Virus record (IMG/VR): IMGVR_UViG_3300027969_000039
Span: 124,001 to 188,000 of that record
Length of the DNA: 64,000 nucleotides
Direction: 5' to 3' (one strand)
Part shown: positions 22,895-55,034 of the stretch, piece by piece
How positions within the stretch are numbered: the first letter of the stretch is position 1
How the letters are laid out: each line of letters starts with the position of its first letter
The notes under the pieces: generated by a model
Databases searched by the model: none
What the model was told of the DNA's origin: nothing
The model's input: only the letters and a program-made list of their open reading frames with translations
Translations under genes and position numbers: made by a program

Positions 22895-23116
22895 TCAAAA
22901 TAGTTTTTTGGGAAGACTTTGGTCACGTAAGTATTTTTGCCATCTGCGTTTGGCTAGACCTTTATCTACTTTACGCTGTATACTAGGCTTGACATATTGT
23001 TCCCGATCACGCAATTCCTGCAATAGGTTTTGGTCTGTAATCTTCTTTTTAAACTTCCGTAATGCTTTTTCAACATTTCCATCTGTTACAATAACTCGTC
23101 TTCCTTTAATACTCAT
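22895..23116 (-). CDS. rpsU: Ribosomal protein bS21
   Basis: [11 protein letters not shown]...ELR.RE.YVKPS..RK; LPKKLF C-terminus resembles betaproteobacterial S21. Confidence 0.92.
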
Positions 23117-28810: not shown

Positions 28811-30145
28811 TCACTTATCGTCTCGGAAGCGAAGGAATCTGGGAAAACGTAAACTGTAAGTTCCGTCTTTATTTTGTGTTATGGTATCACACAAGATTTC
28901 AGCAGTACGACCAATGACCATATCACTATTATCCCAATAGTCAGTTCTATCACTGTCAGTAAACCCGCTACCAACATTGACTGAAATATCGAACCCAAGG
29001 TCGACGCCGGCGCAAACAAGAGCTCCAAGTCGTCCTTTATTCTTACCAGTGCCTTCTTCAACATCAATAACCTCCAAGTCTACAGTAACGGTGGGTTTCC
29101 ATTTCATCCAAGCGGTAGTACGCTTGCATTCATAGAATGCGTCTAGGTCTTTAATCATAATACCTTCGAACCCATCTGCTACATTCTCTCTAGCATAGCG
29201 TTCAAGTTGATTGCGGCCTGCAGCAGTATCTAAATTGACTTTGATATGAGGCAAGTAATCAACATTGGGCATGAGTTCAATTACTTCTTTCATCTTATCT
29301 AATACTTTAAGTCTCTTAGTAAGAGGTTCTTCCCAACGACCTTTAAAGAATTCTTCTAATGGAATAATATCAAAGATATTAAATATGCTATCATCTGCTT
29401 TTACATCAGATTTTCTACGTGCTTGGCGCATTAGTTCTTGGAATGATGCTCCAATTACTTCTCCATCGAGTACAAAACCTTTCTTCAATAGCCTAGAATT
29501 TGTTTTCAACAATAAAGAATAATTAGTAGTAATCTGTTCTTCAATCAGTTTGAAATTTTCAAACTCTTTGCCATTGCGACTATAACATATAACTGCACAT
29601 CCACCTGTATCATTTGGTGTTACTGTCATCAATACACGTACACCATCTAATTTAGGTTCAAGCCGTTTGATACCTTGCATCTCGGGTCTATCTTCACTAG
29701 TGGTTGCTAGTTGACAACCAAATATTGGTATCTCAAATTCAGTACCTTTGCATATTTTGTTAATTGTTTTTTCACTTATACCTGCACGAAGGTCTCTACG
29801 AATGATAGGTGCAACAAATCCATTCCATTCTTCACTATCAAATTTCCATGCCATTTGATGTACTGCTGTAATTGCTGCATTACCTGACAATTCACGCAAA
29901 CTTAATTTGTACAACAAATCGCCAAATTCATCCCAAGGATTAGGGCAATGATTAACCCCTTTAGATTCTGGTACATCACGTACACCGAATGTTACATACG
30001 GATTATAACAGGCCTTTGCAAAGGTAAGGAAATTAATAGCACTTTCATTGCCTAGGACACTTGCGTCTAACGCTTCTTTGATGACCTCTTCCTTATGAAT
30101 TCGGCTATCACTTTCATTCAACTTAGATATCCAACTAACTGACAT
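28811..30145 (-). CDS. ATP-dependent DNA ligase
   Basis: EPKLDGVR (KxDG), SRNGK, LDGE, FDI, EGIMIK, WMKWK, VGSG, SLRFPRF. Confidence 0.95.
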   Translation of the reverse strand: MSVSWISKLNESDSRIHKEEVIKEALDASVLGNESAINFLTFAKACYNPYVTFGVRDVPESKGVNHCPNPWDEFGDLLYKLSLRELSGNAAITAVHQMAWKFDSEEWNGFVAPIIRRDLRAGISEKTINKICKGTEFEIPIFGCQLATTSEDRPEMQGIKRLEPKLDGVRVLMTVTPNDTGGCAVICYSRNGKEFENFKLIEEQITTNYSLLLKTNSRLLKKGFVLDGEVIGASFQELMRQARRKSDVKADDSIFNIFDIIPLEEFFKGRWEEPLTKRLKVLDKMKEVIELMPNVDYLPHIKVNLDTAAGRNQLERYARENVADGFEGIMIKDLDAFYECKRTTAWMKWKPTVTVDLEVIDVEEGTGKNKGRLGALVCAGVDLGFDISVNVGSGFTDSDRTDYWDNSDMVIGRTAEILCDTITQNKDGTYSLRFPRFLRFRDDK

Positions 30146-32782: not shown

Positions 32783-33037
32783 TTATTTCATTAGTAGGCC
32801 CATCAGAATTAGCTTTTCCAAGTGGTCTATCGCTTTATTAATGTTGTCAACTTGAGTTTGGGTATAATCTGTACTGCGAATTCTACGACCATTTACTTCA
32901 AGTTTGCTTAGTTCGGTCACCATAACTTGAATATTATCATACATCTTTTTCAAGTCTGGATTGTAACCCATGCGGTGTAGATCAGTCTTTAGTCTATCTG
33001 ATACTTCTTGCCAATCTAGTGCTGTTTGGATTTTCAT
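32783..33037 (-). CDS. Hypothetical protein (likely start MKIQTALDW)
   Basis: ATG 6 nt downstream of a perfect -10 box. Confidence 0.65.
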   Translation of the reverse strand: MKIQTALDWQEVSDRLKTDLHRMGYNPDLKKMYDNIQVMVTELSKLEVNGRRIRSTDYTQTQVDNINKAIDHLEKLILMGLLMK

Positions 33038-33043
33038 ATTGTT

Positions 33044-33072
33044 ATTATAATACCTTTTGGTATTTATGTCAA
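33044..33072 (-). promoter_or_regulatory. Promoter TTGACA-17-TATAAT
   Basis: Perfect hexamers; spacer differs from the repeated cassette. Confidence 0.8.
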
Positions 33073-33099
33073 GGATGTTGTACAAACATAAATAAGATT

Positions 33100-33744
33100 G
33101 TGAAACCCACAATCGCATTATTCTTGTACGACCCGAAATGCTCCGTCCAATCAGGAAACGGGATGATGAAGGCTTTAAGTGAGTATTATAACTTCAAAAT
33201 CTTTAGTAAAAATAAGTTAGAATACGATTTCTTTGACGGGGTAGATATGATTGCTGTTCCGGGAGGGATCGGGGATAGTGATACATTCAAACAACTTTTC
33301 AAAAACAACGGAAAACGAGTAAAAGATTTCATCCATGGTGGCGGTAGATACTTAGGTATCTGTATGGGTGCATATTGGGCAGGTAGTCATTACTTGAATG
33401 TACTAGATGATGTTGATGCGGTACAGTATATCAAACAACCTGGTACTGATACACGTAGACCACATGCTAAAAACTTAGCAATAACATGGAAAGACGAACC
33501 CATGAACATGTTCTTCTATGATGGGTGTTCGCTAGTTGGCAATAGACACAAATTCAGAACGGTCGCTACATACGCAAATGGTGATGCGATGGCTATCTAT
33601 CAAAAACGCATAGGACTGATTGGTTGTCATCCTGAAAGTGAACAGTTTTGGTATGATAGCTACAGCTACATGAAGGGCAAGTGGCACGGCGGCGAGCAGC
33701 ACGAATTGTTGTTAGATTTCACTAACGATTTAATGAATAGGTAA
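33100..33744 (+). CDS. Class I glutamine amidotransferase-like (BPL_N-type) protein
   Basis: VPGG, GGRYLGICMGAY nucleophile elbow, HPE; GTG start after ATAAATA. Confidence 0.8.
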   Translation: MKPTIALFLYDPKCSVQSGNGMMKALSEYYNFKIFSKNKLEYDFFDGVDMIAVPGGIGDSDTFKQLFKNNGKRVKDFIHGGGRYLGICMGAYWAGSHYLNVLDDVDAVQYIKQPGTDTRRPHAKNLAITWKDEPMNMFFYDGCSLVGNRHKFRTVATYANGDAMAIYQKRIGLIGCHPESEQFWYDSYSYMKGKWHGGEQHELLLDFTNDLMNR

Positions 33745-34124: not shown

Positions 34125-34736
34125 ATGAAAGAAATACTAGAGACATTAAGAGTGCAACGCTGGGACGATCATCGCTATTATCATCACAGCAGGATAAATC
34201 AATTTTTGCATTTAATTAGTGCATTATCATTCATAGTAGCATATGCTTATCTATTCATTGATCCCGTAATTAGTGCTTACATCGCGTGGTTTATCTCAAT
34301 GACTACAAGACAAGCAGGACATTTCTTCTTTGAACCCAAAGATTACGACACATACAATCAGGCCACACAAGATCATAAAGAGGCTATCAAGATTGGATAC
34401 AATCTCAAACGCAAACGAGTATTGATCGCTTGCTGGTTGGCTGTGCCGTTGCTGGCATACTTTGATGCGGCATTGTTTAACTTTGTGATGCCAGACGCTG
34501 CACCAGACACACTAATAGATAGGATTGGTTGGGGTTGGTTATGGTTAGGATTAGCAGCAGTTGTGTTTAGAATGATACAACTTACTGCTATTCAAAGCCG
34601 CAAAGTAGCACTAGTATGGTGCTTAAAGATAATGACAGATCCATTCCATGATGCTGTCATCTATCGCAAGAGTCCATTATATCTGATGCGTGGGCAGTTG
34701 ATTGATCCTGACTTGCGTCAAGATTATGAAGATTAA
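34125..34736 (+). CDS. His-motif integral membrane protein (DUF962/Mpo1-like)
   Basis: YHHSRINQFLH and QAGHFFFE motifs, several TMs. Confidence 0.55.
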   Translation: MKEILETLRVQRWDDHRYYHHSRINQFLHLISALSFIVAYAYLFIDPVISAYIAWFISMTTRQAGHFFFEPKDYDTYNQATQDHKEAIKIGYNLKRKRVLIACWLAVPLLAYFDAALFNFVMPDAAPDTLIDRIGWGWLWLGLAAVVFRMIQLTAIQSRKVALVWCLKIMTDPFHDAVIYRKSPLYLMRGQLIDPDLRQDYED

Positions 34737-35731
34737 AGCGGAGTAAGATTGTCGCGGAATATCTTCCAGGCTCTCTCCCAACTCCAACGCTGGCTACCTT
34801 CTAATACTCTATCTCTATCTAATTGTAGGCAACCAGTTATAGCATCAGCTAGGTTCTCATTCACAAATCCAGTGACACCTTGCTCAACAACATCTAATGG
34901 TCCTAGCACAGGGTATGCTGCTACAGGAGTGCCGCAGGCCATGGCTTCAATCATCACAATGCCAAATGTTTCCCACCGTGAAGGAAACACAAACACATCA
35001 GCATCAGCATAGCATTGTGCTAGAGCGAAGCCGGTCTTGAATCCTTTGAACTCCACATCAGGATATAGTTTTTCCAGTCTAGCACGATCCGGCCCGTCAC
35101 CTACTAATACTTTGCGAGCACCAGGATAATCCAAACTGCAAAACGCATCCAGATTCTTTTCTATGCTGAGTCTGCACACACACAACAGCACAGGACCGGT
35201 GCCTCTGCTGCCGCGATAACCGGGATTAAATATGCTTCGGTCAACGCCGCGGGTCCATGAGTTGATCTCGCCCCAGAAGCCATGTTCTTTCAGTTCCTTC
35301 ACCATACTATCTGTAGTAGTCAATACACGACCACTATGTTTGTGAAACCATCTCACATATTTCCAAGTTATAGATTGTGGTATCCTTAGATACTTATGTA
35401 AGGCTTCAGGATACTTTGTATGATAAGCAGTATTATACCTACGATAGTGCCGGTCAAGATAAAATCTAGCGTAGAGACCAAGAGGACCCTCTGTGGCGAT
35501 GTGTATATAATCCGGAGCCACCGCCCTAATCTTCTCCCCAATCTTCCAGGGAATCGAAATTTTAACTTCACTGTAGCCTGGGCAATCAAAAAATAGGAAC
35601 TCCATGGGAGTAAGGAAAACAACACGATAGTCGTCCAGAACCGCACACGCCTCAATATTCTTATATGTAGTGACAACGCCATTTATTTGCTCTGGTAAGT
35701 TATCCGTTATTATCAGTATCGTCTTGATCAT
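34733..35731 (-). CDS. GT4 glycosyltransferase, Agt-like glycolipid synthase
   Basis: TD...Q.NGVV.T, IHIATEGPLG, YHT.YPE, RGVD, ETFGIV..EAMACGTPV. Confidence 0.85.
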   Translation of the reverse strand: MIKTILIITDNLPEQINGVVTTYKNIEACAVLDDYRVVFLTPMEFLFFDCPGYSEVKISIPWKIGEKIRAVAPDYIHIATEGPLGLYARFYLDRHYRRYNTAYHTKYPEALHKYLRIPQSITWKYVRWFHKHSGRVLTTTDSMVKELKEHGFWGEINSWTRGVDRSIFNPGYRGSRGTGPVLLCVCRLSIEKNLDAFCSLDYPGARKVLVGDGPDRARLEKLYPDVEFKGFKTGFALAQCYADADVFVFPSRWETFGIVMIEAMACGTPVAAYPVLGPLDVVEQGVTGFVNENLADAITGCLQLDRDRVLEGSQRWSWERAWKIFRDNLTPL

Positions 35732-36473
35732 TTTCTCTAGTCCATGTAACTATTTCCCACTTACCATCATGATGCTCTACCAATGCTGTGCATGACTCTA
35801 CCCAGTCACCGTCGTTCATGTAAGTGATTCCATCTATATCTTTGATTTCAGCATGGTGAATATGTCCACATATAACCCCATCAAAGCCTCGCTTCTTACA
35901 GTACTTAGCGAGGTTGTGTTCAAAGTGAAAAATAAAATCAACAGCTTTTTTCACACGCTGTTTCAAATACTGACTAAGACTCCAATAACCAAATCCCATC
36001 TTATGTCTTATCCAATTGAATCTGCTATTCCATGCTAGGATAGTATCGTATGCATAATCTCCTAAGAAACTTATCCAAGGTGCTAGTCTAGTTATACCAT
36101 CAAACAAATCTCCATGCACTACAAGATAATGCTTGCCATCTGCACCTATATGTTCTATCTGATTGTGTATCTCAACGAGTCCAAAACTGAATCCATATGG
36201 AATCATCGGGCGTAGAAATTCATCGTGATTACCAGCAACATATATAACTCTTGTTCCACGTTTAGCGTGACCAAGAACACGACGGACTACATTAGTGTGA
36301 CTCTGCTTCCAACGCCATTTATTTTGTTGGATACGCCATGCATCAATTATATCCCCTACTAGATATAGTGTATCGCATGAGTTATGCTTTAGAAAGTTGT
36401 TGAGTTTGTCAGCTTGACAATCTTTGGTTCCTAAATGCACATCAGAGATAAAAATTGATCTATATGTTTTCAT
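35700..36473 (-). CDS. PlcP-like metallophosphoesterase (phospholipase C; commonly labelled UDP-2,3-diacylglucosamine diphosphatase)
   Basis: SDVHLG, GDIID, GNHD, HGD, GYWSLS, CGHIH, GDWVESCTA; directly upstream of GT4. Confidence 0.8.
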   Translation of the reverse strand: MKTYRSIFISDVHLGTKDCQADKLNNFLKHNSCDTLYLVGDIIDAWRIQQNKWRWKQSHTNVVRRVLGHAKRGTRVIYVAGNHDEFLRPMIPYGFSFGLVEIHNQIEHIGADGKHYLVVHGDLFDGITRLAPWISFLGDYAYDTILAWNSRFNWIRHKMGFGYWSLSQYLKQRVKKAVDFIFHFEHNLAKYCKKRGFDGVICGHIHHAEIKDIDGITYMNDGDWVESCTALVEHHDGKWEIVTWTRENDQDDTDNNG

Positions 36474-36487
36474 TATTATTATTCTAA

Positions 36488-36510
36488 TAAAAAAGAGCCT
36501 TTCGGCTCTT
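36488..36510 (-). terminator. Intrinsic terminator after pstS
   Basis: aagagcc-GAAA-ggctctt followed by a U-run. Confidence 0.8.
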
Positions 36511-36555
36511 AGTGCTGGTTACGAGTTCCAGCCTCCTCTCTATCTTGAGGTCGGT

Positions 36556-37551
36556 TTAAAATAATCCTAGTTGTTTCCAATCAGAACGAATCTTAGCTTT
36601 GACTGCTGCCGGTAATGCAACATAGTCTAACTCATCTGCGGCTTTGTCGCCATTATTGAAAGCCCAATCAAAGAATGTTAGAGCAGTTTTAGATGCAGCA
36701 ACATCACCTGGCTTTACATAAACAAGAATGAATGTAGCACCACTGATAGGCCATGCTTCTTTGCCTGCTTGATTAGTCAATATCTGATAGTAACTCTTGT
36801 TCCAGTCAGCGTTAGCAGCGGCTGCTTTGAATGCATCTTCTGTAGGTGCTACCCAATTGCCTGCTGCATTCTGCACATTGACCCAGTTCATCTTGGCTTG
36901 TTTTACATAAGCATATTCAACATAGCCCAATGCCCCCGGAAGTTGGCGAACCATAGCAGAAACGCCTTCGTTACCCTTACCACCTGCTCCTGTTTTCCAA
37001 CTAACAGCAGTGCCTTCACCGATTGTATCTTTGAACTCTTTGCTGACTTTGCTCAAGTAGTTGGTCCAGATGAATGTTGTGCCACTTCCATCTGCACGGC
37101 GAACCACTGTGATAGCTTGATCGGGCAATGCTAGTGACGGGTTCAATGATTTGATAGCAGCATCATCCCAACGGGTGATCTTGCCCAAGAAGATATCAGC
37201 CATGACTGCACCTGTCAAGCGTAGTTGTCCGGGCTCAATTCCTTTGAGGTTGATTACCGGAACAACTCCACCAATTGCTGTAGGAAACTGAAACAAGCCT
37301 GATGCTTGAAGTTTGTCATCGGTGAGTGGCATGTCACTTGCACCGAACGTGACGGTCTTTGCTTCAATCTGCTTGATGCCTGCGCCTGAACCAACTGATT
37401 GATAGTTGATCTTGATGTTGGTAGACTTGTTATATTCACTCGCCCACTTTGCATATAACGGAGCCGGGAATGTTGCCCCGGCTCCTGTAATCTCTTGTGC
37501 TGATGCAGCGAATGCTATCACTGCCAATAATGTTGTAAACAGTTTTTTCAT
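36556..37551 (-). CDS. pstS: Phosphate ABC transporter substrate-binding protein
   Basis: GAGATFPAPLY, YQSVGSGAG, FGASD, RRADGSGTT, GKGNEGV, GYVEY, WPI; signal peptide. Confidence 0.97.
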   Translation of the reverse strand: MKKLFTTLLAVIAFAASAQEITGAGATFPAPLYAKWASEYNKSTNIKINYQSVGSGAGIKQIEAKTVTFGASDMPLTDDKLQASGLFQFPTAIGGVVPVINLKGIEPGQLRLTGAVMADIFLGKITRWDDAAIKSLNPSLALPDQAITVVRRADGSGTTFIWTNYLSKVSKEFKDTIGEGTAVSWKTGAGGKGNEGVSAMVRQLPGALGYVEYAYVKQAKMNWVNVQNAAGNWVAPTEDAFKAAAANADWNKSYYQILTNQAGKEAWPISGATFILVYVKPGDVAASKTALTFFDWAFNNGDKAADELDYVALPAAVKAKIRSDWKQLGLF

Positions 37552-37582
37552 GTAATCTCCTTGTGTGTTACACAAATATTTA

Positions 37583-37611
37583 GTGACATAATTGTGACAG
37601 TAATATTACAT
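37583..37611 (-). promoter_or_regulatory. Pho box (three 11-bp-phased half sites) abutting a TAAATA motif
   Basis: ATGTAAT-atta-CTGTCAC-aatt-ATGTCAC-TAAATA upstream of pstS. Confidence 0.8.
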
Positions 37612-37616
37612 CCATA

Positions 37617-37640
37617 AGAAAAGGGCAACTAGTGCCCTTT
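37617..37640 (-). terminator. Intrinsic terminator after porin
   Basis: aaagggca/tgcccttt stem with U-rich tail. Confidence 0.7.
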
Positions 37641-37658
37641 GTTCTAATTTGAGTTAGA

Positions 37659-38558
37659 TTAGAAATTGAATTCTACGCCTACACCGTATTGATTAATATC
37701 AGTAGCAGCATCTAGGTAACTCCAACGAGCATTGAATGTCAATGCTTTGTTCATCGCATAGCTTACACCCAAACCACGACCGGTCACGCTAGTGTTAGTC
37801 TGACCATATGTACCTTGAACTGCAAAACGATCACCGATTGCTTGGCTGATACCAACGCTAGAACCTGTGGTGCTTACATTAGATACCTTGTCATCGCTAT
37901 ACATTCCGAACACTGTAGTTCCAGTACTAACCAATTTGTATTTCACACCAACGATAGTGCTGAGACTGGTGCTGCTGTCATCATAACGAGCGACTGTAGC
38001 AGACATAGGTCCCAAAGTGTAGCTGATGCTACCAGTCTGAACATTAGTAGTTCCAGCAGTTTCGCTATTAGCCATCACATATTGTCCTGTGAAGCCAGCG
38101 ATACTTGCTGTGTTCACGAACAAACCATTTTGCAAACGACTGCCTTGTGCAGAGTGAATGGTAGCGGCAATAGTGCCATACGCATTGTCAAATGCGTCAT
38201 AGTTATCCAACACACGAACTACACTGTGCTTGTCACGACCCATGCCTAAAGAACCTAAATTATTGCTCAAGCTAAAGAGTGAAGTACGATCACCTAAAGT
38301 GGTAGCACTTGGTGCGTCCATTGCTACGCCAGTTTCGATGATAACGGCAGCGGTGATTCCATCACCAACATCACTAGAGGCTTTTACACCTAAGCGGCTT
38401 GAGTCATTGGTCAACCGAGTGAGGGCACTAGCGGTACCAGCTGTGTATGATTCTTGATACTCACGTACTTTGCCATAGACGCTGACTTGGGGAGCGGTTT
38501 GTGCTAGCACAAAACCTGAGGCCAATGCTAGGGCCAAGAGTAAAGCATATTTCTTCAT
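37659..38558 (-). CDS. Gram-negative general porin (betaproteobacterial type)
   Basis: Signal peptide, VSVYG, SRLG.K, G.L.MGR, alternating beta strands, C-terminal Phe. Confidence 0.85.
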   Translation of the reverse strand: MKKYALLLALALASGFVLAQTAPQVSVYGKVREYQESYTAGTASALTRLTNDSSRLGVKASSDVGDGITAAVIIETGVAMDAPSATTLGDRTSLFSLSNNLGSLGMGRDKHSVVRVLDNYDAFDNAYGTIAATIHSAQGSRLQNGLFVNTASIAGFTGQYVMANSETAGTTNVQTGSISYTLGPMSATVARYDDSSTSLSTIVGVKYKLVSTGTTVFGMYSDDKVSNVSTTGSSVGISQAIGDRFAVQGTYGQTNTSVTGRGLGVSYAMNKALTFNARWSYLDAATDINQYGVGVEFNF

Positions 38559-38690
38559 ATTATATTTCCTTTAGTTTATAATAACCCTTCTGGGGTTAGA
38601 ATAATATTTAGTCCGACAAATCCTGTCAAATAAATTATGTATTCAAGCAAAGAGTATACACTGATTACGCAATGTATTCTACTTAATATG

Positions 38691-38730: not shown

Positions 38731-38805
38731 TTAACGATTAGCAATATACATGGTAATTTCAAAACCGAAACGCATATCGCTTGCTTGAGGGGTAGTCCAT
38801 TTCAT
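38731..38805 (-). CDS. pqqA: PQQ precursor peptide PqqA (MKWTTPQASDMRFGFEITMYIANR), not in ORF track
   Basis: 24 aa, W-x-x-P leader, GFE-x-x-x-Y core, ANR end; AGGAG RBS; own terminator. Confidence 0.93.
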   Translation of the reverse strand: MKWTTPQASDMRFGFEITMYIANR

Positions 38806-38911
38806 AATTGTTCTCCTATATCAAATTGACATTGTATATATCGTTTATATGTGTTGCCATAACCTAAATAACATAGTGAAAAGTATGAATCTTTATTAGT
38901 GTTACTACTAA

Positions 38912-38934
38912 TAAGAAACCCGCCGAAGCGGGTT
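38912..38934 (-). terminator. Terminator of the tmRNA gene
   Basis: aacccgc-UUCG-gcgggtt followed by U-rich tail. Confidence 0.8.
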
Positions 38935-38939
38935 CTGGT

Positions 38940-39232
38940 TGTTTCTTTTATACAGTAAGTCCTACTGCACCTTAGCTTAAGCAGCTAAAGAATATAACTC
39001 ATCGTTTGCAGTTATGAAATTTGCTTGATTAACGGTCATCGCCTACCGTGTTGCCGTCTCTACTATCTACCTCTGTCGAAACCAGGGCAGGCCCGTCAGA
39101 AGCATACTCCTACAGATCGAAACTGATAAAGATAAGTGCGTACACCTATCCGAGTGAGTATGCTTATGGTGGACCTGGCGGGAGTCGAACCCGCGTCCAG
39201 AAGTCCTTCGCTTTGAAGGGATTACAACAATA
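38940..39232 (-). ncRNA. ssrA: Circularly permuted (two-piece) tmRNA, tag (A)ANDELYSLAA
   Basis: Acceptor piece with T-arm and CAGGUCC-ACCA ends at 39167 and precedes the coding piece starting GGGCCUG at 39094; G3.U70 pair; tag ORF 38977-39009; ends approximate. Confidence 0.92.
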
Positions 39233-39243
39233 ACTTCTATTTA

Positions 39244-39387
39244 TCACCAAGTTTTCTTAGCGATCCAATGTTGGATTTCTTGCACCCGCCATGCTAGTCC
39301 CCAAGGCAGTGTGAAAAATATCTTCTCACCACTAGGAGTATACATGGTCCGACCATCACTGTCAACCCCCATCAATCCTATAAACAT
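39244..39387 (-). CDS. 47-aa hypothetical protein (likely start MFIGLMG)
   Basis: GAGGAG RBS. Confidence 0.55.
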   Translation of the reverse strand: MFIGLMGVDSDGRTMYTPSGEKIFFTLPWGLAWRVQEIQHWIAKKTW

Positions 39388-39722: not shown

Positions 39723-41930
39723 TTATACACTTTTAAATTCTAGTTTGTCAAATTTAATGGGTGTATAATGTTTTGGAGATGTAGTATGTGAATTAGGAAC
39801 AGCTACGTTATATCTTTCAGGATTTGCCCATGAACCAGTATCTTGCCATTTATGTTTAAATGAGAAATCAATTGTACTATTTAAATGTCTTTCTTCTGCA
39901 ATTAACTCCATGAATTCTTCGTGATTTCTGCCACCGTCTCCCCACTTTGGTTTAGCTAGTTTTCTAGCACGAATGGATGCATTAGATTGTTGTCTAGAAT
40001 AATCTTGTGCAAAAAACGGAGATTTTGCCGATAAAGGATCTACTGGATCGATAATAGTGACCGGTTGTTGATAGTAATAATCAAAATCTGCTTCCCAATT
40101 ACCTTCATCATCTATTGTAAAATTATGATTAGCCCAATAAGGGCCGGCATTTCTTTCACCAAATTCTATCATATCTAAATCTTGATCAAATTTAATTGTA
40201 GCAGTAAATCCTCCTCGTGTACGCCATAGTATTCTAAACAATGTAAATATTTCATTTACTAAACTATCAGCAAAGGGATTGATGTCAGGATGTATTATAT
40301 TGTAATCAAAGTTTTCATATTCAATTTCTTTTTGCATTGTAGGATCATCAAACACAATTTTATAATGATGCATTGGCAAATTACCACGCTGCGGGATTGA
40401 AACTGATTTTTCAGTTAACAAATGCTGCAAGAATACTGCAAATACTTTCATCCTAACCATGACATGAAATTTAGAAAGTTTGAAATCTTTAGTTATCCAT
40501 CCACCTGCATACTTGTGTGCTAGTAAATTAAACTTATCAGGATTTTGTCCAACAATAGTATCCATACCTAAACCAAATCCAAATCCAGCAGCAATATTAG
40601 CTATGTTGTTATTTCTATTACGCCATAAAAAAGTCATTGTATCTGCAAAATTTTGATATGATTCTGTTGGGAACCCTACTATCCAATTGGTAAAAGCATT
40701 TACTCCAGTTTTCTTCCCATCTATAAAGTTTTGTTCCATTTCAGCAATAGTAACACCTTTGTCAATATCATCTAGTACAGGCTGACTTCCAGACTCTATG
40801 CCATAGTTTAACATATGACAACCTGAATCAGCTAAATCTTGATAGAATGCTAAATCCATTCGTCCATCACATCTTGCATATCCAGTCCAATGAATTTTCA
40901 TACCTTTAGCAATGACTCCTTTGCAGAAGGCTCTAAGTTCATTTAGATTTCCATTTACCAAACTATCAATAAACCAAACTATGTCAGTTCCTTTTTCATA
41001 GTATAATGTTTCTATTTCTTTTAGAATATCAGTAGCCATGCGTTGACGATATTTCCAAAAATGTGTTTCTTCACAAAAGGTGCATTTTGCAGTACAACCT
41101 CTACTCAGTTCACTATTAACTCCATTTGGAAATTCATATTCATTGAAATCAAAATTAGAATAATCAGGCATAGGCAAGTCATTCAAATTTAATCTTTGTT
41201 CTTCAGGTTGTGCTAGCTTTTGAACCTTGTCGTGAATTATTCCGTTTTCAATTTCTTCTAAAATTTCTAAAAGAAGTAATTCACCTTCCCCATTGATAAC
41301 ATAATCAAACATATTATCATCTTCTCCACTCCAAGCATGTGGTTCTTGGCAAGGTCTAATATTAGGACCACCTACTAGTATTTTAATATTTGGCAATCTT
41401 TCTCTTAATTTTTTCACCATATACTTAACTGGTTCTGCATTTGTATAGTACATAGTAAATCCTATAACGTCAGGAGGATTTTTAACAATCTGTTCTATGT
41501 ATTTGTTTAATAAAATGCTCAGATGCGGATGTATATCACTATGGTAGTCTTTTGCTAACCATTTCCAATCTCTTGCGCCGTCCCACGGGTCGAAATCAAT
41601 AAGTCCATCATTTCGCCATTTGTGAGATAAGTTATATGCCTTTACATTCAAATCAATACAATTAGATTCATATCCAGCGCCTTTTGCAACCGCAGACAGT
41701 CTTGCAAGATTGAACGGTGGAAACATTGGTGCCCATTCTGGACAAAGTATTAATAATAACTTTGTTTTTCTATACGCATAGTTGATATCAATAGTAGTTA
41801 CATTTTTTTGAACTTTAGTTTTTGCATAAGGTGCAATAGCTTGCAACATAGCCAGATGCTTAATATCAGCGTCAGGCTCTAGTGGTCTTGATTCCACTAT
41901 CTTTTTTTTATATTGATATAATTCACTCAT
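39723..41930 (-). CDS. Cobalamin-binding radical SAM enzyme
   Basis: PPFNLARL, VGGP, GEGE, SRGCTAKCTFC, GIESGS, IVGFPTE. Confidence 0.9.
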   Translation of the reverse strand: MSELYQYKKKIVESRPLEPDADIKHLAMLQAIAPYAKTKVQKNVTTIDINYAYRKTKLLLILCPEWAPMFPPFNLARLSAVAKGAGYESNCIDLNVKAYNLSHKWRNDGLIDFDPWDGARDWKWLAKDYHSDIHPHLSILLNKYIEQIVKNPPDVIGFTMYYTNAEPVKYMVKKLRERLPNIKILVGGPNIRPCQEPHAWSGEDDNMFDYVINGEGELLLLEILEEIENGIIHDKVQKLAQPEEQRLNLNDLPMPDYSNFDFNEYEFPNGVNSELSRGCTAKCTFCEETHFWKYRQRMATDILKEIETLYYEKGTDIVWFIDSLVNGNLNELRAFCKGVIAKGMKIHWTGYARCDGRMDLAFYQDLADSGCHMLNYGIESGSQPVLDDIDKGVTIAEMEQNFIDGKKTGVNAFTNWIVGFPTESYQNFADTMTFLWRNRNNNIANIAAGFGFGLGMDTIVGQNPDKFNLLAHKYAGGWITKDFKLSKFHVMVRMKVFAVFLQHLLTEKSVSIPQRGNLPMHHYKIVFDDPTMQKEIEYENFDYNIIHPDINPFADSLVNEIFTLFRILWRTRGGFTATIKFDQDLDMIEFGERNAGPYWANHNFTIDDEGNWEADFDYYYQQPVTIIDPVDPLSAKSPFFAQDYSRQQSNASIRARKLAKPKWGDGGRNHEEFMELIAEERHLNSTIDFSFKHKWQDTGSWANPERYNVAVPNSHTTSPKHYTPIKFDKLEFKSV

Positions 41931-44900
41931 ATATATTTTTAAATTTTTCTTTTAACCAAACCCAATCATAGCTTAGTCGTAATTGTGTTAAGTCACCGTT
42001 GACTTGTTCATAATATTGTACAGCATGTTGGGCACCTTGTAAACTATATTCGGCAAAGTCACCAATTGCTGTTGTTAGCCATGTATTTAATCGTATTTCA
42101 TTTTCTTCCGTTTTGGATGCTTTTAACTTAATACATTCACGGAAAGCTGTACGCCATGCATCCCACTCACTACTGTTATACATACCAATACCACAATTAA
42201 CAGGAACAACTTCATGCTCACTATCCATTGTAAAGTCTAACCCAGTACCAAAGTTCTCTAATGTAAGTTTTTTGTTGTTAGCAACGATAGCTTGATGACC
42301 ATATACTAACCCGTTCACTGGATTGGTAGCATGAAATATATAGTGCTTAGGTATCTGTAATCTGTCCGGTTGCCAGTTAAAATCAAACTTTGCTGATACT
42401 TTTAATTTAGCGTTTACTAAAAAATACCATGGTGTATTGCTACTATTTGCCGCAGCGTGTTGACTTTTTACACGACCATTTATACCGTCTATTCTAGTAA
42501 TTTTGTTTGGTAATCCTTGTGTTATCTTTAATAGATGTTCGTAATTTCTATCAGCACTAGTTTCACCGTTACTAAAGAACACAATGTCCAATGGGTTAGA
42601 TTCTATAAGTTTATTATTCTTAATAATGTATGGATAATCGTATAACTCTTTCTTTACATACTGTTTAGCTTCTTTTGGAACTATAATTCTTGTTCCACCT
42701 GTACTAGTAATAGTAATATTTTTAGTTTCATTGCTCCATAGATTCATTGGTTCAACATCAACGGCATTGATGTTTTTATTATCTTCAGTCACAAACACAG
42801 CGTATGGAAAATTAAAATCAGTATTTACGCTAGAAGCATGTGTATCATTTTCTGTAATAATGATTGGAGCCGGCAATCGGTTTACTCTTTGATGTTGATT
42901 ATAGTTAATCTTCCCATACTCTTCCAAAGAGTTCATATTATCAATCAATGTTCTAAGTTTATTAACATCAATTAAAAATGTGTCACCAAACTTTTGCCTA
43001 TCGCTAGGAAATACATGTAAGTGTTCTTTAGCAAATGGGTCGCAAATATAAGTAAAATCAAAATCTTTATAATCACATACTGTACTAGCTACCCACACAT
43101 AATGTTCTTTTTTTACTGGGAGTTTATCTAGCATACTCTTAAAAGTATTCAAATAACTAGTTTCATACTTAATAATTAAGTTATTGATATTAGACAAGTC
43201 TTTATTGTCATGGTCGATATAAACTATATCATACAATACATTAGACGCTTTGGCTTTTATAGTTTTAACAAAATTCAAGTTAGAAAGATGTTCAATAATT
43301 TTTATATATTTGGTATCTTGCGGGAATGTTTCTTTATTAACTAAGTAAGTGGTACCCCAATGACTCCACTGAGTGCCGAACACATGCACCATCTTCATTT
43401 GCCATGGGTTAGGATAATATTCAAAATCAAAATCAGTGTAATCTAATTCACTATTGAGTATCCAACATAAATTACTGGTAGCACGATTGATGCAGCGATT
43501 TATTGTATCGACCCAACTGTTTAAATATCTTGTCTTTATTATATTTGGGAATCTAATCTTAAGTTTTTCAAATCTAGTTTGTGATTCAATATTACTTCTA
43601 TCAACAAAGAACATATCAATTTTATTTTTTATTTGTTCTTCTACCCAATTAAACTCAGTATTTCCTCTGAGCCACATTACAGAGTTTACTAAAAAAGTTT
43701 GTGTTTTTGTGTTTTCACTTGAACCAAACACTTGAATATACTGTGACTGCTCAATACTAGGTTTCCAATCAAAATTAAAATTAGTATAATCTATGTGAGG
43801 ATTTAATGCCCAAAATATTTCGTCAGGATGTTGTTTAATCAAATCTTCTAATGAAGTGGTCAACAAATATTTAGGATAAGATTTTTCAATTTCAATTGGC
43901 TTTTCTAAAACTATTCTTTCCATATACACTGATTCACCAGTGTTATCAGGGGTCAAATATCTAGGACCGTCATCCCTATCTAATATTGTACCAAATCTAT
44001 AAACAAACGGTGGGCTGGTATCATCGGGATGCCAGCTGAAATCAAAGTTACTAACATCTATACCATCAGATACTTTCCAATTAACCATTGTAGCTAATCG
44101 CACAGATTTTATATCATCTATATATTTTATTTCAGTTGCATCTTCAACTACATATCTTGGGCCATTTGTTTTTTGATGTTGTGTTCCAAATTGGTATATG
44201 TATGGTTTTTCATTAGTGTTGGGGTGCCAGCTAAAATCAAACTGACTAATATCAATAGTATTTGGAATGATCCAATTTGGTGATATTTCTGTGGTAACCA
44301 CTGTTGCCCTTAAGGTGTCTATATATTTAATTTCAGATGCGCCTTCAACTTCATATCTCAATCCACCTGTACTTTGATGCTGTGTTCCAAATTCATATAT
44401 TAATGGAGGGTCAGTATCATCAGGGTGCCATGAGTAATCAAAATTATCAATAGGAAGAAGTTCTTTCCAGTTTTTTTTATTAGGCAATCTTTTTGCTTTT
44501 TGAACGCTTACATATTTTATTTCAGTGGCATTTTCAACTATATATTTTGGTCCACCTGTCTTTTGATGTTGTGTACCAAATTGATATATGTATGGGGGTG
44601 CATCTGGGTGGGGAACCCATGTAAAATCAAAATTTTCTGTGTCTATGTCAGACGGTATGCTCCAGTTATTTTTATTTGCTTTGGTACATGCTTTGATATC
44701 TTCTACGTAACTAAATTGTGTAGCATCTTTAACTACATATTTTGGACCACCGCGGTTATTCCATATAGTAGCAAATTCGTAAATATATGGTGGACTAGTT
44801 GGATTAGGTCTCCAACTGAAATCAAACTTAGTAGCATCAATATTATCAGGTATTTCCCAATTAGTTTGATCAGGCAATAATTCAACTTCATCGAACATAT

Positions 44901-45984
44901 ATTTTCGTTTAGTTGCCCCTGGACAATAATAAGCTAATACAGGTTCAACCGCTGCTTCATTCCACTTGCTGCCCCATACATACACAAACGGAGGTTCGGT
45001 ATCATCTGGGTGCCATGAGTAATCAAAATTAGTTACTGGTAGTATTTCTTTCCAGTTTTCCCTATTAGGCAATCTTTTTGCTTTTTGAATATCTATATAT
45101 TTTATGTCTGTGGCATCTTTAACTATATACCTTGGCCCACCTGTCTTTTGCCATTGAGTACCAAATTCGTATATATATAGAGGACTAGTTGGATTAGGTC
45201 TCCAACTAAAATCAAATTCAGCAGTGTCAATGTTATCAGGTATTTCCCAATTAATTTTATTAGGCATCAAGTCTAATAAAGTATCAAGATATTTTCTGTT
45301 AGTTGCGTTAGGACAATAATAAGCTAATACAGGTTCAACCGCTGCTTCATTCCACTTGCTACCCCATACATACACAAACGGAGGTTCTCTCGGGTCAGGT
45401 CTCCATGACAAATCAAACTTAGACTTATCAATAGGTATTATTTCTTTAAAATTTTTGCTGGGTAATAATTCAACTACTTGATCCATATACTTACGATCAA
45501 TATCATGCGAATAAGGAGCATGATATTCTAGTACTGGTTGTAATTCTACCGGATTCCATTTATTACCCCATACATATACATATGGAGGGCTAGATGGATC
45601 TGGATGCCAACTGAAATCAAATTTAGTTTCATCAACTAAATCTAGCAATACCCAATTGTCGTTTTTTTCGTTTTTTCTTTTTAGTGGATCAACATCAGCA
45701 CGATATATAATTATTTCACTATATTGTTTAGGGCATAACCATGTGCCACTATCTTTTTGATGAAAGCTAGGCCATACATTGTTATGTTCTTCTGCCCAAA
45801 CATCCTCATCGGGCAAGAATTCAAAGTCAAAATCCCAATCAAAATTACGATAATCACAATGTTCGTTGATTATCCAAAAATGTTCCGTGGTACATTGATT
45901 TCTAGCATCTTCTATTGAAGTTGCAAATCTTTCTCTTGGGTGAATATTGGGTTTAGAGCCGTAATAAAAGACATCTCGTAGCAT
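41923..45984 (-). CDS. 1353-aa repeat protein with C-terminal glycosyltransferase-like domain
   Basis: About 10-12 FDFSW(H/R)P...PYIY.FG modules; C-terminus (RIDGING...H.AAA...AWRTAFREC.K) resembles 57610-58563. Confidence 0.7.
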   Translation of the reverse strand: MLRDVFYYGSKPNIHPRERFATSIEDARNQCTTEHFWIINEHCDYRNFDWDFDFEFLPDEDVWAEEHNNVWPSFHQKDSGTWLCPKQYSEIIIYRADVDPLKRKNEKNDNWVLLDLVDETKFDFSWHPDPSSPPYVYVWGNKWNPVELQPVLEYHAPYSHDIDRKYMDQVVELLPSKNFKEIIPIDKSKFDLSWRPDPREPPFVYVWGSKWNEAAVEPVLAYYCPNATNRKYLDTLLDLMPNKINWEIPDNIDTAEFDFSWRPNPTSPLYIYEFGTQWQKTGGPRYIVKDATDIKYIDIQKAKRLPNRENWKEILPVTNFDYSWHPDDTEPPFVYVWGSKWNEAAVEPVLAYYCPGATKRKYMFDEVELLPDQTNWEIPDNIDATKFDFSWRPNPTSPPYIYEFATIWNNRGGPKYVVKDATQFSYVEDIKACTKANKNNWSIPSDIDTENFDFTWVPHPDAPPYIYQFGTQHQKTGGPKYIVENATEIKYVSVQKAKRLPNKKNWKELLPIDNFDYSWHPDDTDPPLIYEFGTQHQSTGGLRYEVEGASEIKYIDTLRATVVTTEISPNWIIPNTIDISQFDFSWHPNTNEKPYIYQFGTQHQKTNGPRYVVEDATEIKYIDDIKSVRLATMVNWKVSDGIDVSNFDFSWHPDDTSPPFVYRFGTILDRDDGPRYLTPDNTGESVYMERIVLEKPIEIEKSYPKYLLTTSLEDLIKQHPDEIFWALNPHIDYTNFNFDWKPSIEQSQYIQVFGSSENTKTQTFLVNSVMWLRGNTEFNWVEEQIKNKIDMFFVDRSNIESQTRFEKLKIRFPNIIKTRYLNSWVDTINRCINRATSNLCWILNSELDYTDFDFEYYPNPWQMKMVHVFGTQWSHWGTTYLVNKETFPQDTKYIKIIEHLSNLNFVKTIKAKASNVLYDIVYIDHDNKDLSNINNLIIKYETSYLNTFKSMLDKLPVKKEHYVWVASTVCDYKDFDFTYICDPFAKEHLHVFPSDRQKFGDTFLIDVNKLRTLIDNMNSLEEYGKINYNQHQRVNRLPAPIIITENDTHASSVNTDFNFPYAVFVTEDNKNINAVDVEPMNLWSNETKNITITSTGGTRIIVPKEAKQYVKKELYDYPYIIKNNKLIESNPLDIVFFSNGETSADRNYEHLLKITQGLPNKITRIDGINGRVKSQHAAANSSNTPWYFLVNAKLKVSAKFDFNWQPDRLQIPKHYIFHATNPVNGLVYGHQAIVANNKKLTLENFGTGLDFTMDSEHEVVPVNCGIGMYNSSEWDAWRTAFRECIKLKASKTEENEIRLNTWLTTAIGDFAEYSLQGAQHAVQYYEQVNGDLTQLRLSYDWVWLKEKFKNIYE
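44788..45387. repeat. Near-identical internal DNA repeats at 390-bp (130-codon) offset
   Basis: 44921-44997 vs 45311-45387 differ at one base; about 44791-44862 matches about 45181-45252. Confidence 0.85.
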
Positions 45985-46006
45985 CTTATATTTAAACAGT
46001 TACTGT

Positions 46007-48267: not shown

Positions 48268-48299
48268 AAAATTTCCTTATTTAATATAATGGTTAAAAT

Positions 48300-48312
48300 T
48301 ATTTAGTAAATA
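48300..48312. promoter_or_regulatory. Back-to-back TAAATA late-type promoters
   Basis: tatttag-taaata between divergent genes. Confidence 0.55.
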
Positions 48313-48316
48313 ATAG

Positions 48317-51424: not shown

Positions 51425-51425
51425 A

Positions 51426-55000: not shown

Positions 55001-55034
55001 AATATTTTTAATTCATTCATAATATTTTTAATTC
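54990..55034. repeat. Exact 20-bp tandem duplication at a gene junction
   Basis: attcattcataatattttta twice plus a partial copy. Confidence 0.9.

Follow-up and report, generated by a model that had tools for sequence, protein, structure and literature searches.

A phosphate-starvation gene block with a predicted lipid-remodelling enzyme pair in a large freshwater phage

Can a phage that encodes its own phosphate-binding protein also draw on the membrane phospholipids of its host as a phosphorus source? The question was raised by a 64-kb stretch of DNA, here called the window, which is part of a 211.6-kb IMG/VR viral contig. The initial annotation described four co-oriented genes for a porin, PstS, a metallophosphoesterase and a GT4 glycosyltransferase, with a three-repeat Pho box before pstS. 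It proposed that the phage imports phosphate and also mines phosphorus from the host membrane, replacing phospholipids with glycolipids, to supply genome replication. The described genes and the Pho box were confirmed. The proposed function was only partly supported by the follow-up analysis.

Gene content and promoters of the block

All four open reading frames were present on the minus strand (Table 1). The GT4 showed the Pfam domains Glycos_transf_1 (1.3e-24) and Glyco_transf_4 (1.2e-11). The esterase matched Pfam Metallophos at 4.7e-12, with the GNHD motif at G81-N82-H83-D84. PstS reached 427 bits with the NCBIfam equivalog NF008171, with a cut-off of 339, as well as 390 bits with TIGR00975 and 2e-70 with phrog_5385. 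It was about 55% identical to enterobacterial PstS and about 40% identical to cyanophage PstS. The porin had no direct Pfam or NCBIfam hit, but homologues at 63-92% identity carried PF13609 (Porin_4). Its AlphaFold model (pLDDT 69) was a 16-strand barrel, and the best Foldseek matches were OmpT, Omp32 and BpsOmp38, with E values of 1e-15 to 2e-16 and a TM of about 0.7. Local G+C was higher, at 42% against 30-39%.

Table 1. Features of the gene block and its neighbours, with positions in the window.
Position	Strand	Feature	Details
38601..38629	-	Sigma-70-type promoter of the porin gene	TTGACA-17-TATTAT, 11 of 12 matches
37659..38558	-	Outer-membrane general porin	299 aa, signal peptide, C-terminal Phe
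37620..37640	-	Terminator-like hairpin	After the porin stop codon
37577..37611	-	Pho-box-type promoter	Three 7-bp direct repeats at 11-bp phasing (37611-37605, 37600-37594, 37589-37583), then TAAATA (37582-37577) as the likely -10
36556..37551	-	pstS, periplasmic high-affinity phosphate-binding protein	331 aa from ATG 37551, AAGGAG 7 nt upstream, signal peptide
36509..36559	-	Conserved two-hairpin RNA motif	Directly after the pstS stop; hairpin 1 pairs 36550-36547 with 36538-36535, hairpin 2 pairs 36532-36528 with 36518-36514
36487..36510	-	Intrinsic-terminator-like hairpin	Hairpin 36510-36493, 7-bp stem, GAAA loop, T6; ends about 14 nt before the esterase ATG
35700..36473	-	PlcP-like, LpxH-fold metallophosphoesterase	257 aa, no signal peptide
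34733..35731	-	Agt-like GT4 glycosyltransferase	332 aa; start overlaps the end of the esterase gene by 32 nt
34125..34736	+	Conserved membrane-type protein of unknown function	203 aa; convergent with the GT4, 4-nt tail overlap
33019..33744	+	BPL_N / class-I amidotransferase-like protein	Frequent neighbour of the cassette in related phages

The repeats ATGTAAT-atta-CTGTCAC-aatt-ATGTCAC (37611-37583) formed the only Pho box in the window. A degenerate two-repeat pattern matched only there, with two overlapping hits against 0.06 expected, and none of 100 shuffled sequences reached two. The layout was conserved upstream of divergent viral pstS genes. All eight distinct upstream regions that were examined had 11-bp-phased TGTnAY repeats plus TAAATA. 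Three points of the gene arrangement were corrected. The pstS gene, listed as 36556-37575 from TTG 37575, most likely starts at the downstream ATG. The four genes are not one simple operon, as the porin has its own promoter without Pho-box repeats and a hairpin after its stop codon. This hairpin was read directly from the sequence. The hairpin search listed it on the plus strand only, and the minus-strand T tract fell just under the threshold of that search. Finally, a structured RNA motif and an intrinsic-terminator-like hairpin separate pstS from the esterase, for which neither a Pho box nor a sigma-70 match was found.

The RNA motif was covarying. A covariance model found 28 hits in viral loci, all on the coding strand, none in bacterial loci and one in the window. 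Pairing was kept in 99 of 100 cells in hairpin 1 and 125 of 125 in hairpin 2, with compensatory changes. No Rfam family matched. In sibling loci, the motif plus terminator also closed other genes of the cassette. Of the two plus-strand neighbours, the 203-aa protein travels with the GT4 form of the cassette. It was 92-96% identical and adjacent to the GT4 in the related viral loci L005-L008, L090, L092 and L112. Only a weak Mpo1-like hit was obtained, at 19.8 bits against a cut-off of 24, and none of its thousands of near-identical copies had a Pfam domain. The BPL_N-like protein matched PF09825 at 3.8e-10 and lay directly upstream of the esterase in L005-L008 and in at least 15 IMG/VR loci.

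Affiliation and spread of the esterase and glycosyltransferase

Grouping of the esterase with LpxH had been named in advance as a result that would overturn the lipid-remodelling reading, and it was not observed. LpxH models scored 43.7 and 35.3 bits, far below the equivalog cut-offs of 134 and 190. Identity to E. coli LpxH was 22.5% over 120 aa, and E. coli LpxH sat on a branch of about 9.5 substitutions per site in the tree. The viral sequences formed one clade with an SH-aLRT of 100. The esterase grouped with PlcP-like proteins, inside a bacterial family whose alphaproteobacterial members lie directly upstream of canonical agt genes. It was 52-63% identical to alphaproteobacterial homologues. 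In 31 alphaproteobacterial loci, the homologue, at 52-59% identity, was directly followed by a GT4, and those GT4s carried the published Agt/GTcp motifs GRVAxEKN and FPSxTDTFG (PMC8231724). This is the 'type 2' plcP-agt arrangement of PMC4796936. The nearest bacterial relatives of the viral esterase, the Hyphomonadaceae, had no adjacent GT. The experimentally characterised PlcP proteins SMc00171, MED193_17359 and PA3219 were not included in the comparison, and the family assignment rests on the synteny-defined bacterial homologues. The metal-binding and catalytic residues were invariant.

The GT4 belongs to the Agt/GTcp clade by length, by 35-44% identity over full length to bacterial GT4s that follow plcP-like genes, and by His104 and Gly82/85. 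T160-R161 was also kept. The donor motifs read CRLSIEKN and FPSRWETFG. The catalytic Asp motif FPSxTDTFG has become FPSxWETFG, a change fixed once in the viral clade, where a WE clade of 27 sequences had 97% support. The D256E change cost GTcp more than 90% of its activity (PMC8231724), which makes the product of the viral enzyme uncertain. The dN/dS of the GT4 was about 0.13.

More than 600 viral contigs in IMG/VR carried the esterase at 84-93% identity under strong purifying selection, with a pS of about 0.82 (saturated) and a pN of about 0.10. A GT followed directly in 76 of 80 loci, and the other four loci ended just after the esterase gene. A GT2 was present in 48 loci and a GT4 in 28, so that about 60% of related phages pair the esterase with a GT2. 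The specificity of this GT2 is unknown and it only weakly resembled arsenosugar- and mycofactocin-type GTs. Unlike in the window, sibling phages carried Pho-box-like repeats directly upstream of the esterase. A strict repeat pair was found there in 26 of 67 distinct loci (39%), against 0.36% of background windows, together with a TAAATA -10. L090 is a natural variant without pstS, in which the same Pho-box promoter runs into the RNA motif, the terminator and then the esterase. L120 and L146 keep the motif between pstS and the esterase without a terminator, which implies co-transcription there.

Comparison with described systems

The arrangement was compared with the PlcP-Agt lipid renovation pathway of Sinorhizobium meliloti, Agrobacterium tumefaciens, SAR11 HTCC7211, Phaeobacter MED193 and Pseudomonas aeruginosa (PA3219/PA3218). 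An LpxH-like metallophosphoesterase directly followed by a GT4 of about 330 aa, Pho-box promoters and the EKN motif are shared. The cassette differs in being encoded by a virus, in the Glu that replaces the catalytic Asp, in the GT2 of most related phages and, in the window, in the pstS gene, RNA motif and terminator between the Pho box and the esterase. With LpxH itself, a UDP-2,3-diacylglucosamine diphosphatase, the esterase shares the calcineurin-like fold with a helical lipid-binding insertion and the metal-binding motifs. The top 11 PDB matches of its AlphaFold model (pLDDT 86) were LpxH structures, with E values of about 1e-10 and a TM of 0.55-0.6, but identity was only 16-22% and clade and genomic context were distinct.

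Cyanophage pstS and phoA are auxiliary genes driven by the host PhoBR system (Zeng and Chisholm 2012; PMC10976474). The pstS gene described here likewise lies behind a host-type Pho box and is presumably induced in phosphate-starved hosts. However, its product is of the enterobacterial type and it is joined to a porin and to lipid-remodelling enzymes, which to our knowledge is not reported for cyanophages. The porin and pstS also resemble phage morons, which are promoter-gene-terminator units, and phage-borne porins such as the lambdoid Lc/NmpC porins. Each is a self-contained unit with its own promoter and terminator inserted in a phage genome, but here several such units of one physiological theme are clustered. 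The parallel with the Lc/NmpC porins was not tested in this analysis.

PlcP-like genes are already present in isolated phages. Pelagibacter phage Mosig EXVC030M (genes 119/120) and Synechococcus phage S-SRM01 carry PlcP-like esterases with 48% and 37% identity, respectively. In Mosig, the gene lies back to back with a divergent pstS gene and is preceded by TAAATA 5 nt before its ATG, as in the freshwater loci. No glycosyltransferase follows, and the esterases fell outside the freshwater viral clade, which fits separate acquisitions. Both are annotated as UDP-2,3-diacylglucosamine hydrolase or diphosphatase, and the Mosig and Melnitz papers do not mention them. AMG surveys list viral lpxH under LPS biosynthesis. 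In the searched literature, no description of a phage PlcP-glycosyltransferase pair was found, in agreement with the initial annotation, which knew of no phage-encoded PlcP-Agt pair.

Interpretation of the block

Several alternative explanations were considered. The most plausible of them, though tentative, is that the lipid genes of this particular phage are uncoupled from phosphate sensing. Transcription from the Pho promoter would then stop at the terminator after pstS, and the esterase-GT4 pair would be expressed from an unrecognised phage promoter on the infection timetable. The T6 hairpin, the lack of a recognisable promoter for the esterase and the closing of other cassette genes by the motif plus terminator in sibling loci support this view, while the co-transcription implied in L120 and L146 and the promoter arrangement of L090 speak against it. 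The two-hairpin motif could be a cis-acting read-through element, which is speculation. It is less likely that the same chemistry mainly serves to change the host surface or membrane, for example to block superinfecting phages, to resist cationic peptides or to stabilise the envelope of a cell carrying a very large phage, with phosphorus gain being secondary. PlcP-dependent lipid remodelling has been linked to phage adsorption and polymyxin tolerance in bacteria (PMC9804370, PMC9938194, PMC8528852). The constitutive-type porin promoter and the position of the lipid genes behind a terminator would also fit. However, the repeats upstream of the esterase in sibling loci and the repeated linkage of the cassette to pstS both point to phosphate stress as the trigger.

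It is similarly doubtful that the esterase acts on another pyrophosphate- or phosphodiester-linked lipid or nucleotide substrate instead of bulk phospholipid, with the following GT building a different glycoconjugate in envelope-glycan or lipid-intermediate metabolism. The interchangeable partner GT and the lost Asp motif would allow this, and the LpxH-like fold alone does not fix the substrate. Against it stand the Pho-type promoters and the full-length identity to homologues in canonical plcP-agt operons, and bacterial plcP also pairs with non-GT4 glycolipid GTs (types 3 and 5 in PMC4796936). A lipid A biosynthesis gene of the LpxH type that boosts LPS synthesis is very unlikely. It is suggested by the database names, including many homologues named LpxH by JGI, by the AMG surveys and by the PDB matches. 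The low model scores, the low identity, the long branch in the tree and the alphaproteobacterial relatives next to agt contradict it. Alphaproteobacteria use LpxI rather than LpxH.

The explanation that we consider more likely than not is a block of host-derived auxiliary genes in a freshwater jumbo phage, acting when the infected Gram-negative cell is phosphate-starved. The sequence analysis itself demonstrates the consensus sigma-70 promoter of the porin, the host-type Pho-box promoter of pstS with repeats in the -35 position, a TAAATA -10 and a leader with a Shine-Dalgarno sequence, and the translational coupling of esterase and GT4. The functional steps are inferred. Phospholipase C activity, glycolipid synthesis and PhoB binding have not been shown, the enzyme activities are untested, no biochemical data exist for any viral member, and the host, with its PhoB and membrane lipids, is not known. 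In this model, phosphorylated host PhoB switches on phage pstS. The extra periplasmic PstS would feed the host PstCAB importer, and the porin may raise outer-membrane permeability for anions. In the window, Pho control of the lipid genes would be indirect and need read-through from the pstS promoter across the RNA motif and the terminator, whereas in many sibling phages the esterase has its own Pho-box-like promoter. The cytoplasmic PlcP-like esterase would cleave inner-membrane phospholipids to diacylglycerol and phospho-head groups, from which host phosphatases would free phosphate for phage DNA synthesis. One copy of the 211,612-bp contig alone holds about 0.42 million P atoms. The Agt-like GT4 would glycosylate the diacylglycerol to a P-free glycolipid, which would keep the membrane intact until lysis. 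Together with the recurrence of the enzyme pair in related phages, this suggests that phages probably turn host membrane phospholipid into a phosphorus source.

Gene content of the block

The initial annotation had described four co-oriented genes and a three-repeat Pho box before pstS, and these features were all confirmed. Four ORFs were located head to tail on the minus strand, and the start of the GT4 gene overlaps the esterase gene by 32 nt (see table). The upstream region of pstS showed an ATG at 37551 with AAGGAG 7 nt before it, which is a better start than the listed TTG at 37575. The repeats ATGTAAT-atta-CTGTCAC-aatt-ATGTCAC were followed at once by TAAATA. These three repeats at 11-bp phasing fit the layout of a PhoB binding site, which has at least two 7-bp CTGTCAT-like direct repeats with a 4-bp A/T-rich spacer, in the -35 position about 10 bp upstream of a -10 element. 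A degenerate two-repeat Pho-box pattern matched nowhere else in the 64 kb, giving 2 overlapping hits against 0.06 expected, and a looser pattern gave the same two hits. The G+C content was 42% here and 30-39% in the flanks. A DNA-level search of the block against isolated phages yielded only short matches, to jumbo phage XacN1 in the tmRNA and to the Melnitz phages in the pqqA-like ORF, and nothing in the module itself.

Coordinates of features in the window and in related loci
Sequence	Position	Strand	Feature
Window	2354-8704	+	ORF of 2116 aa without Pfam or PHROG match
Window	9040-9774	+	D-Ala-D-Ala carboxypeptidase (Peptidase_S11)
Window	17642-18685		Twitch-domain radical SAM gene, just below the NF033640 cut-off
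Window	23113-24321	-	ClpX-like ATPase shared with jumbo phages G, Atu_ph07 and Lak
Window	28811-30145	-	ATP-dependent DNA ligase, phage-type
Window	34733-35731	-	Agt-like GT4, 332 aa
Window	35700-36473	-	PlcP-like metallophosphoesterase, 257 aa
Window	36510-36487		Terminator-like hairpin with T6, ending about 14 nt before the esterase ATG
Window	36509-36559		Conserved two-hairpin RNA motif
Window	36556-37575	-	pstS as listed
Window	37611-37583		Three Pho-box repeats
Window	37659-38558	-	Porin candidate
Window	38731-38805	-	PqqA-like ORF, 24 aa
Window	38886-39282	-	Two-piece (permuted) tmRNA, tag ANDELYSLAA
Window	39723-41930		B12-binding radical SAM protein
Window	41923-45984	-	ORF of 1353 aa without Pfam or PHROG match
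Window	47071-48267	-	Nucleotide-sugar dehydrogenase
Window	48317-50239		B12-binding radical SAM protein
Window	51426-52670		Twitch-domain radical SAM paralogue, above the NF033640 cut-off
Window	52671-53642		Further radical SAM gene
Window	53639-55000		Twitch-domain radical SAM paralogue, above the NF033640 cut-off
Window	55017-56219		Twitch-domain radical SAM paralogue, above the NF033640 cut-off
Window	56216-57616		Twitch-domain radical SAM paralogue, above the NF033640 cut-off
Window	61743-62990	-	Protein with Peptidase_G2 tail-spike chaperone domain
Locus L001	8907-10203		Commoner viral form, esterase paired with a GT2
Locus L090	1190-1340		Pho-box promoter, RNA motif and terminator before the esterase, pstS missing
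Locus L134	7907-7957		RNA motif, first of two direct copies
Locus L134	9894-9944		RNA motif, second of two direct copies
Locus L170	4985-5003		TAAATA region upstream of the esterase ATG

PstS passed the NCBIfam equivalog cut-off of NF008171 with 427 bits against 339. Its N-terminus has a hydrophobic core followed by ASA-QE, as in a periplasmic signal peptide. The porin gave no direct family hit, including none in Pfam at E < 0.01, but homologues at 63-92% identity carry PF13609 (Porin_4). The AlphaFold model (pLDDT 69) was a barrel of about 16 strands with a helical segment at 112-134. The best PDB matches were V. cholerae OmpT, the anion-selective Omp32 and BpsOmp38, at TM about 0.7. The protein thus has the features of a general trimeric porin, i.e., a 16-strand beta-barrel with an internal L3 loop, a signal peptide and a C-terminal aromatic residue. 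It did not match the phosphate-selective PhoE/OprP type. Its gene has a consensus sigma-70 promoter and no Pho box, and OprP was not among the 50 best structural matches, although pore selectivity itself was not measured.

The tmRNA matched Rfam beta_tmRNA at 155.6 bits (gathering score 84) and tmRNA_permuted at 148 bits. Together with the Omp32/BpsOmp38-like porin, it is only a hint of a betaproteobacterial-type host, and no host was identified. The PqqA-like ORF passed the precursor-peptide equivalog TIGR02107 with 38.1 bits against a cut-off of 20. Its only DNA match to isolated phages was a 'hypothetical protein' of the Methylophilales phages Melnitz. No PqqB-E genes were recognised nearby. 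Radical SAM genes were unusually dense at 39723-57616, with a further one at 17642-18685. The five of the twitch-domain family had Pfam Radical_SAM or PHROG matches. Those near pqqA are twitch-domain and B12 types, not PqqE, and the function of the set is unknown. The nucleotide-sugar dehydrogenase was most like UDP-glucose 6-dehydrogenases but below the family cut-off, with 145.9 bits against 189.8. It could supply UDP-glucuronate, a donor used by bacterial Agt enzymes. There is no evidence of a link to the GT4, and this is only a lead.

Relationships of the esterase and the glycosyltransferase

The esterase matched Pfam Metallophos at 4.7e-12 and has all calcineurin-type metal-binding residues. 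D11, H13, D41, N82, H83, H120, H204 and H206 were invariant across 32 diverse homologues. PHROGs gave only generic labels for the esterase and the GT4. The initial annotation had stated in advance that its reading would fall if the phosphoesterase grouped with LpxH, and this was not observed. Several results show that the esterase is not LpxH. The LpxH equivalog cut-offs of NF003743 and TIGR01854 were not reached, with 43.7 bits against 134 and 35.3 bits against 190. Identity to E. coli LpxH was 22.5% over 120 residues. A sequence search of the PDB found only LpxH, at E 5e-5, and no PlcP structure exists there. In the esterase tree, all viral sequences formed one clade (SH-aLRT 100), nested in the bacterial PlcP-like family next to a Hyphomonadaceae group, and E. 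coli LpxH was about 9.5 substitutions per site away. The model (pLDDT 86) nevertheless has the LpxH fold, with helices 127-194 forming the insertion, and the top 11 Foldseek hits were LpxH. This fits a lipid substrate. A signal peptide is absent, so the enzyme should act from the cytoplasmic side.

A scan of one genome per species, of which the best 80 loci were examined, identified the closest cellular relatives in Alphaproteobacteria at 52-63% identity (E 1e-85 to 1e-104). In 31 of those loci, the esterase gene was directly followed by a GT4 with 35-44% identity to that of the window over about 330 aa. This is the 'type 2' plcP-agt arrangement described for marine bacteria (PMC4796936). None of the loci came from a characterised strain, and no characterised PlcP or Agt sequence was compared, including MED193_17359, for which BLASTP E < 1e-40 is the published measure (PMC4796936). 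The link to PlcP proper therefore rests on these synteny-defined homologues. For scale, characterised PlcPs are 46-47% identical to each other (PMC8528852). A search of the B. cenocepacia PlcP paper for terms related to structure or the active site found none. Release of diacylglycerol from phospholipids was not assayed.

The GT4 carries Pfam GT4 domains and is by descent a member of the Agt/GTcp clade. H104, G82 and G85, the catalytic and donor-site residues (PMC8231724), have identical numbering in the window protein and are conserved in all viral and bacterial members. The T160-R161-G162 segment (TRGVD), which corresponds to the diacylglycerol-binding Thr162/Arg163, aligned with RGVD in all members, whereas Trp320 was not mapped. 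The bacterial GT4s carry the two motifs published for the clade, GRVAxEKN and FPSxTDTFG (PMC8231724). For the first, a UDP-sugar motif, the window has CRLSIEKN and other viral members have [S/A/C]RVSxEKN. R, E, K and N are kept but the leading Gly is replaced, so that this motif speaks neither clearly for nor clearly against an Agt-type donor site. The second reads FPSRWETFG in the window, and the catalytic Asp is replaced by Glu. In GTcp, the D256E change removed more than 90% of activity (PMC8231724). All viral GT4s separated from the bacterial ones in a tree (99%). The 27 members with WE formed one clade (97%), while two basal viral members, from loci L134 and L011, have TD, as do all 31 bacterial ones, and branched in between. 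The change therefore arose once, after the gene entered phages. The protein lacks one defining catalytic feature of Agt, so its sugar donor and product were not assigned.

Distribution, promoters and a conserved RNA motif

The block is viral and widespread. The window was 100% identical to IMGVR_UViG_3300027969_002424, which is 211,612 bp. An identical copy of a neighbouring protein was found on a 363.7-kb contig. Close esterase homologues (84-93%) were detected on more than 600 IMG/VR contigs of up to 524 kb. They also occurred on 324-360-kb metagenome contigs full of ORFans, with a LysM-GH19 lysin, a dCMP deaminase and similar genes. The window also encodes the ClpX-like ATPase shared with jumbo phages, the phage-type DNA ligase and the tail-spike chaperone domain. 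No capsid or terminase gene was identified in the ORFs scanned. Four contigs, L009, L010, L011 and L012, were binned into Haliscomenobacter, Polynucleobacter, Fischerella and gammaproteobacterial MAGs. They carry the viral-type esterase (75-88% identity), some carry the RNA motif, and they are probably mis-binned phage DNA.

The conserved unit was esterase plus glycosyltransferase. In the lipid-renovation pathway, a gene for a P-free lipid synthase (agt, another GT or btaAB) lies immediately downstream of plcP, and the window shows this arrangement, with the GT4 gene overlapping the esterase gene. A glycosyltransferase followed the esterase on the same strand in 76 of 80 IMG/VR loci, and the other four loci ended within about 300 nt. 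Twenty-eight loci have the Agt-like GT4 and 48 have a 239-aa GT2, which matched Pfam GT2 families but only weakly NCBIfam models, and which is in some loci followed by an Fe/Mn superoxide dismutase. pstS, a porin, the BPL_N-like gene and the gene for a 203-aa protein come and go around this core. The viral GT2, the 203-aa protein, the BPL_N-like protein and the porin had no homologues in the bacterial plcP loci examined, and their origin was not assigned. Selection on the esterase was strongly purifying, with saturated synonymous sites (median pS 0.82) and a pN of 0.10. For close GT4 pairs, dN/dS was about 0.13.

All eight distinct viral pstS upstream regions, from genes only 50-92% identical, showed two or three TGTnAY repeats at 11-bp phasing, followed by TAAATA and a leader of about 25 nt with AAGGAG. 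This conservation across divergent genes supports a functional PhoB-type promoter, although binding of PhoB~P and induction by low phosphate were not measured. The first two repeats are the box proper, and the third fills the roughly 10-bp gap before the -10; in the window, TAAATA follows the first two repeats 11 bp later. Many sibling phages have the same kind of repeats directly upstream of the esterase. A strict pair occurred in 26 of 67 distinct upstream regions, compared to 0.36% of background windows. TAAATA lies only 4-7 nt before the ATG, in loci L091, L096, L103, L001 and many others as well as in Pelagibacter phage Mosig (for example TAAATAttggtATG and TAAATAttgatATG). This suggests leaderless mRNAs from Pho-type promoters and a promoter-plus-gene unit shared between marine and freshwater phages.

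The window differed from these loci. The porin has its own TTGACA-17-TATTAT promoter and a hairpin after its stop. The RNA motif and the terminator-like hairpin follow pstS, and no promoter is recognisable for the esterase. Whether the esterase operon has a Pho box, as bacterial plcP operons do, was thus left undecided for the window, where the only such site precedes pstS and a hairpin intervenes. Locus L090 is a natural variant, 93% identical in the esterase, in which pstS is missing and the same Pho-box promoter runs straight into the motif, the terminator and the esterase. In loci L120 and L146, the motif lies between pstS and the esterase without a terminator. Co-transcription from the Pho promoter is therefore plausible in the window, but it requires read-through and is not shown.

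A covariance model built from 19 copies of the RNA motif found 28 copies in 1.18 Mb of loci. All were on the coding strand of viral loci, none was in the bacterial loci searched and one was in the window. Each sits just after a stop codon, either upstream of the esterase or downstream of the GT or pstS. The two copies in L134 bracket the esterase-GT4 cassette, raising the possibility that the motif marks cassette borders, through recombination or shared 3' ends. Hairpin 1 paired in 99 of 100 cells and hairpin 2 in 125 of 125, with several compensatory changes that include one complete stem swap. Rfam, which returned only the tmRNA, has no family for the motif. A pseudoknot between the 5' CGR and the hairpin-2 loop YCG is only suggestive, with two invariant pairs and a third that pairs in 20 of 25 sequences, and is not claimed. 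The role of the motif is unknown, candidates being a 3'-end stability element, a processing site or a cis-acting read-through element in the manner of phage put RNAs.

Proposed mechanism and meaning of the viral cassette

The initial annotation had inferred that the phage imports phosphate and also mines phosphorus from the host membrane, replacing phospholipids with glycolipids. This interpretation was partly supported: its identifications and general logic held, but it was weakened by the indirect Pho control in this window and by the altered catalytic motif of the GT4. The analysis itself demonstrates the homologies, the intact catalytic sites apart from the changed GT4 motif, the conserved gene pairing, the purifying selection and the conserved Pho-type promoters. 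The steps that follow are inferred. Host PhoB~P would induce phage pstS and, by read-through here or directly in sibling phages, the lipid genes. The esterase would cleave PE and PG to diacylglycerol plus phospho-head groups, from which host phosphatases would release phosphate. The GT would turn diacylglycerol into glycolipid so that the membrane survives until lysis. The phosphorus demand is large, as one 211,612-bp genome copy holds by arithmetic about 0.42 million P atoms. Bacterial phospholipid amounts to millions of molecules per cell, although this was not computed for the host.

PlcP-like genes are already present in isolated phages. Pelagibacter phage Mosig has one at 48% identity, divergent from its pstS and with TAAATA 5 nt before the ATG, and Synechococcus phage S-SRM01 has one at 37% identity. 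Both are annotated as LpxH enzymes, and the Mosig and Melnitz papers do not mention them. These two esterases fell outside the freshwater viral clade, which fits more than one acquisition. AMG surveys list viral 'lpxH' under LPS biosynthesis. Full-text searches on plcP in phages and on phage-encoded lipid remodelling, which did not cover most subscription journals, found no description of a phage PlcP or of a PlcP-GT pair. The cassette is a new, viral version of a known bacterial pathway. It is far more widespread than one window suggests, with the GT2-paired form being the commoner one, and the derived GT4 and the GT2 partner are new enzymes.

In a broader reading, which is tentative but not excluded by the data, a large, globally spread group of freshwater jumbo phages, and separately some marine phages, carry their own PhoB-triggered lipid-renovation cassette. 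During infection of phosphate-starved cells, the virus would convert host phospholipid into glycolipid to pay for its very large genome. It would use a virus-specific Agt derivative (TD to WE at the catalytic site) or a GT2, which may make a glycolipid not seen in bacteria. The previously undescribed two-hairpin RNA motif would govern termination or read-through at the cassette borders. In this view, viral 'lpxH' counts in AMG surveys would be P-scavenging genes, not LPS genes; the viral 'lpxH' genes counted there are probably PlcP-like.

The cassette occurs in more than 600 IMG/VR contigs, is under strong purifying selection and often sits behind Pho-box-like promoters. It is therefore likely to matter ecologically. 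Phage genes for phosphate uptake (pstS, phoA) are a textbook case of viruses rewiring host nutrition. A virus that also strips phosphorus out of the host membrane would add a second, internal P source, and it would tie viral infection to membrane lipid composition in P-limited lakes.
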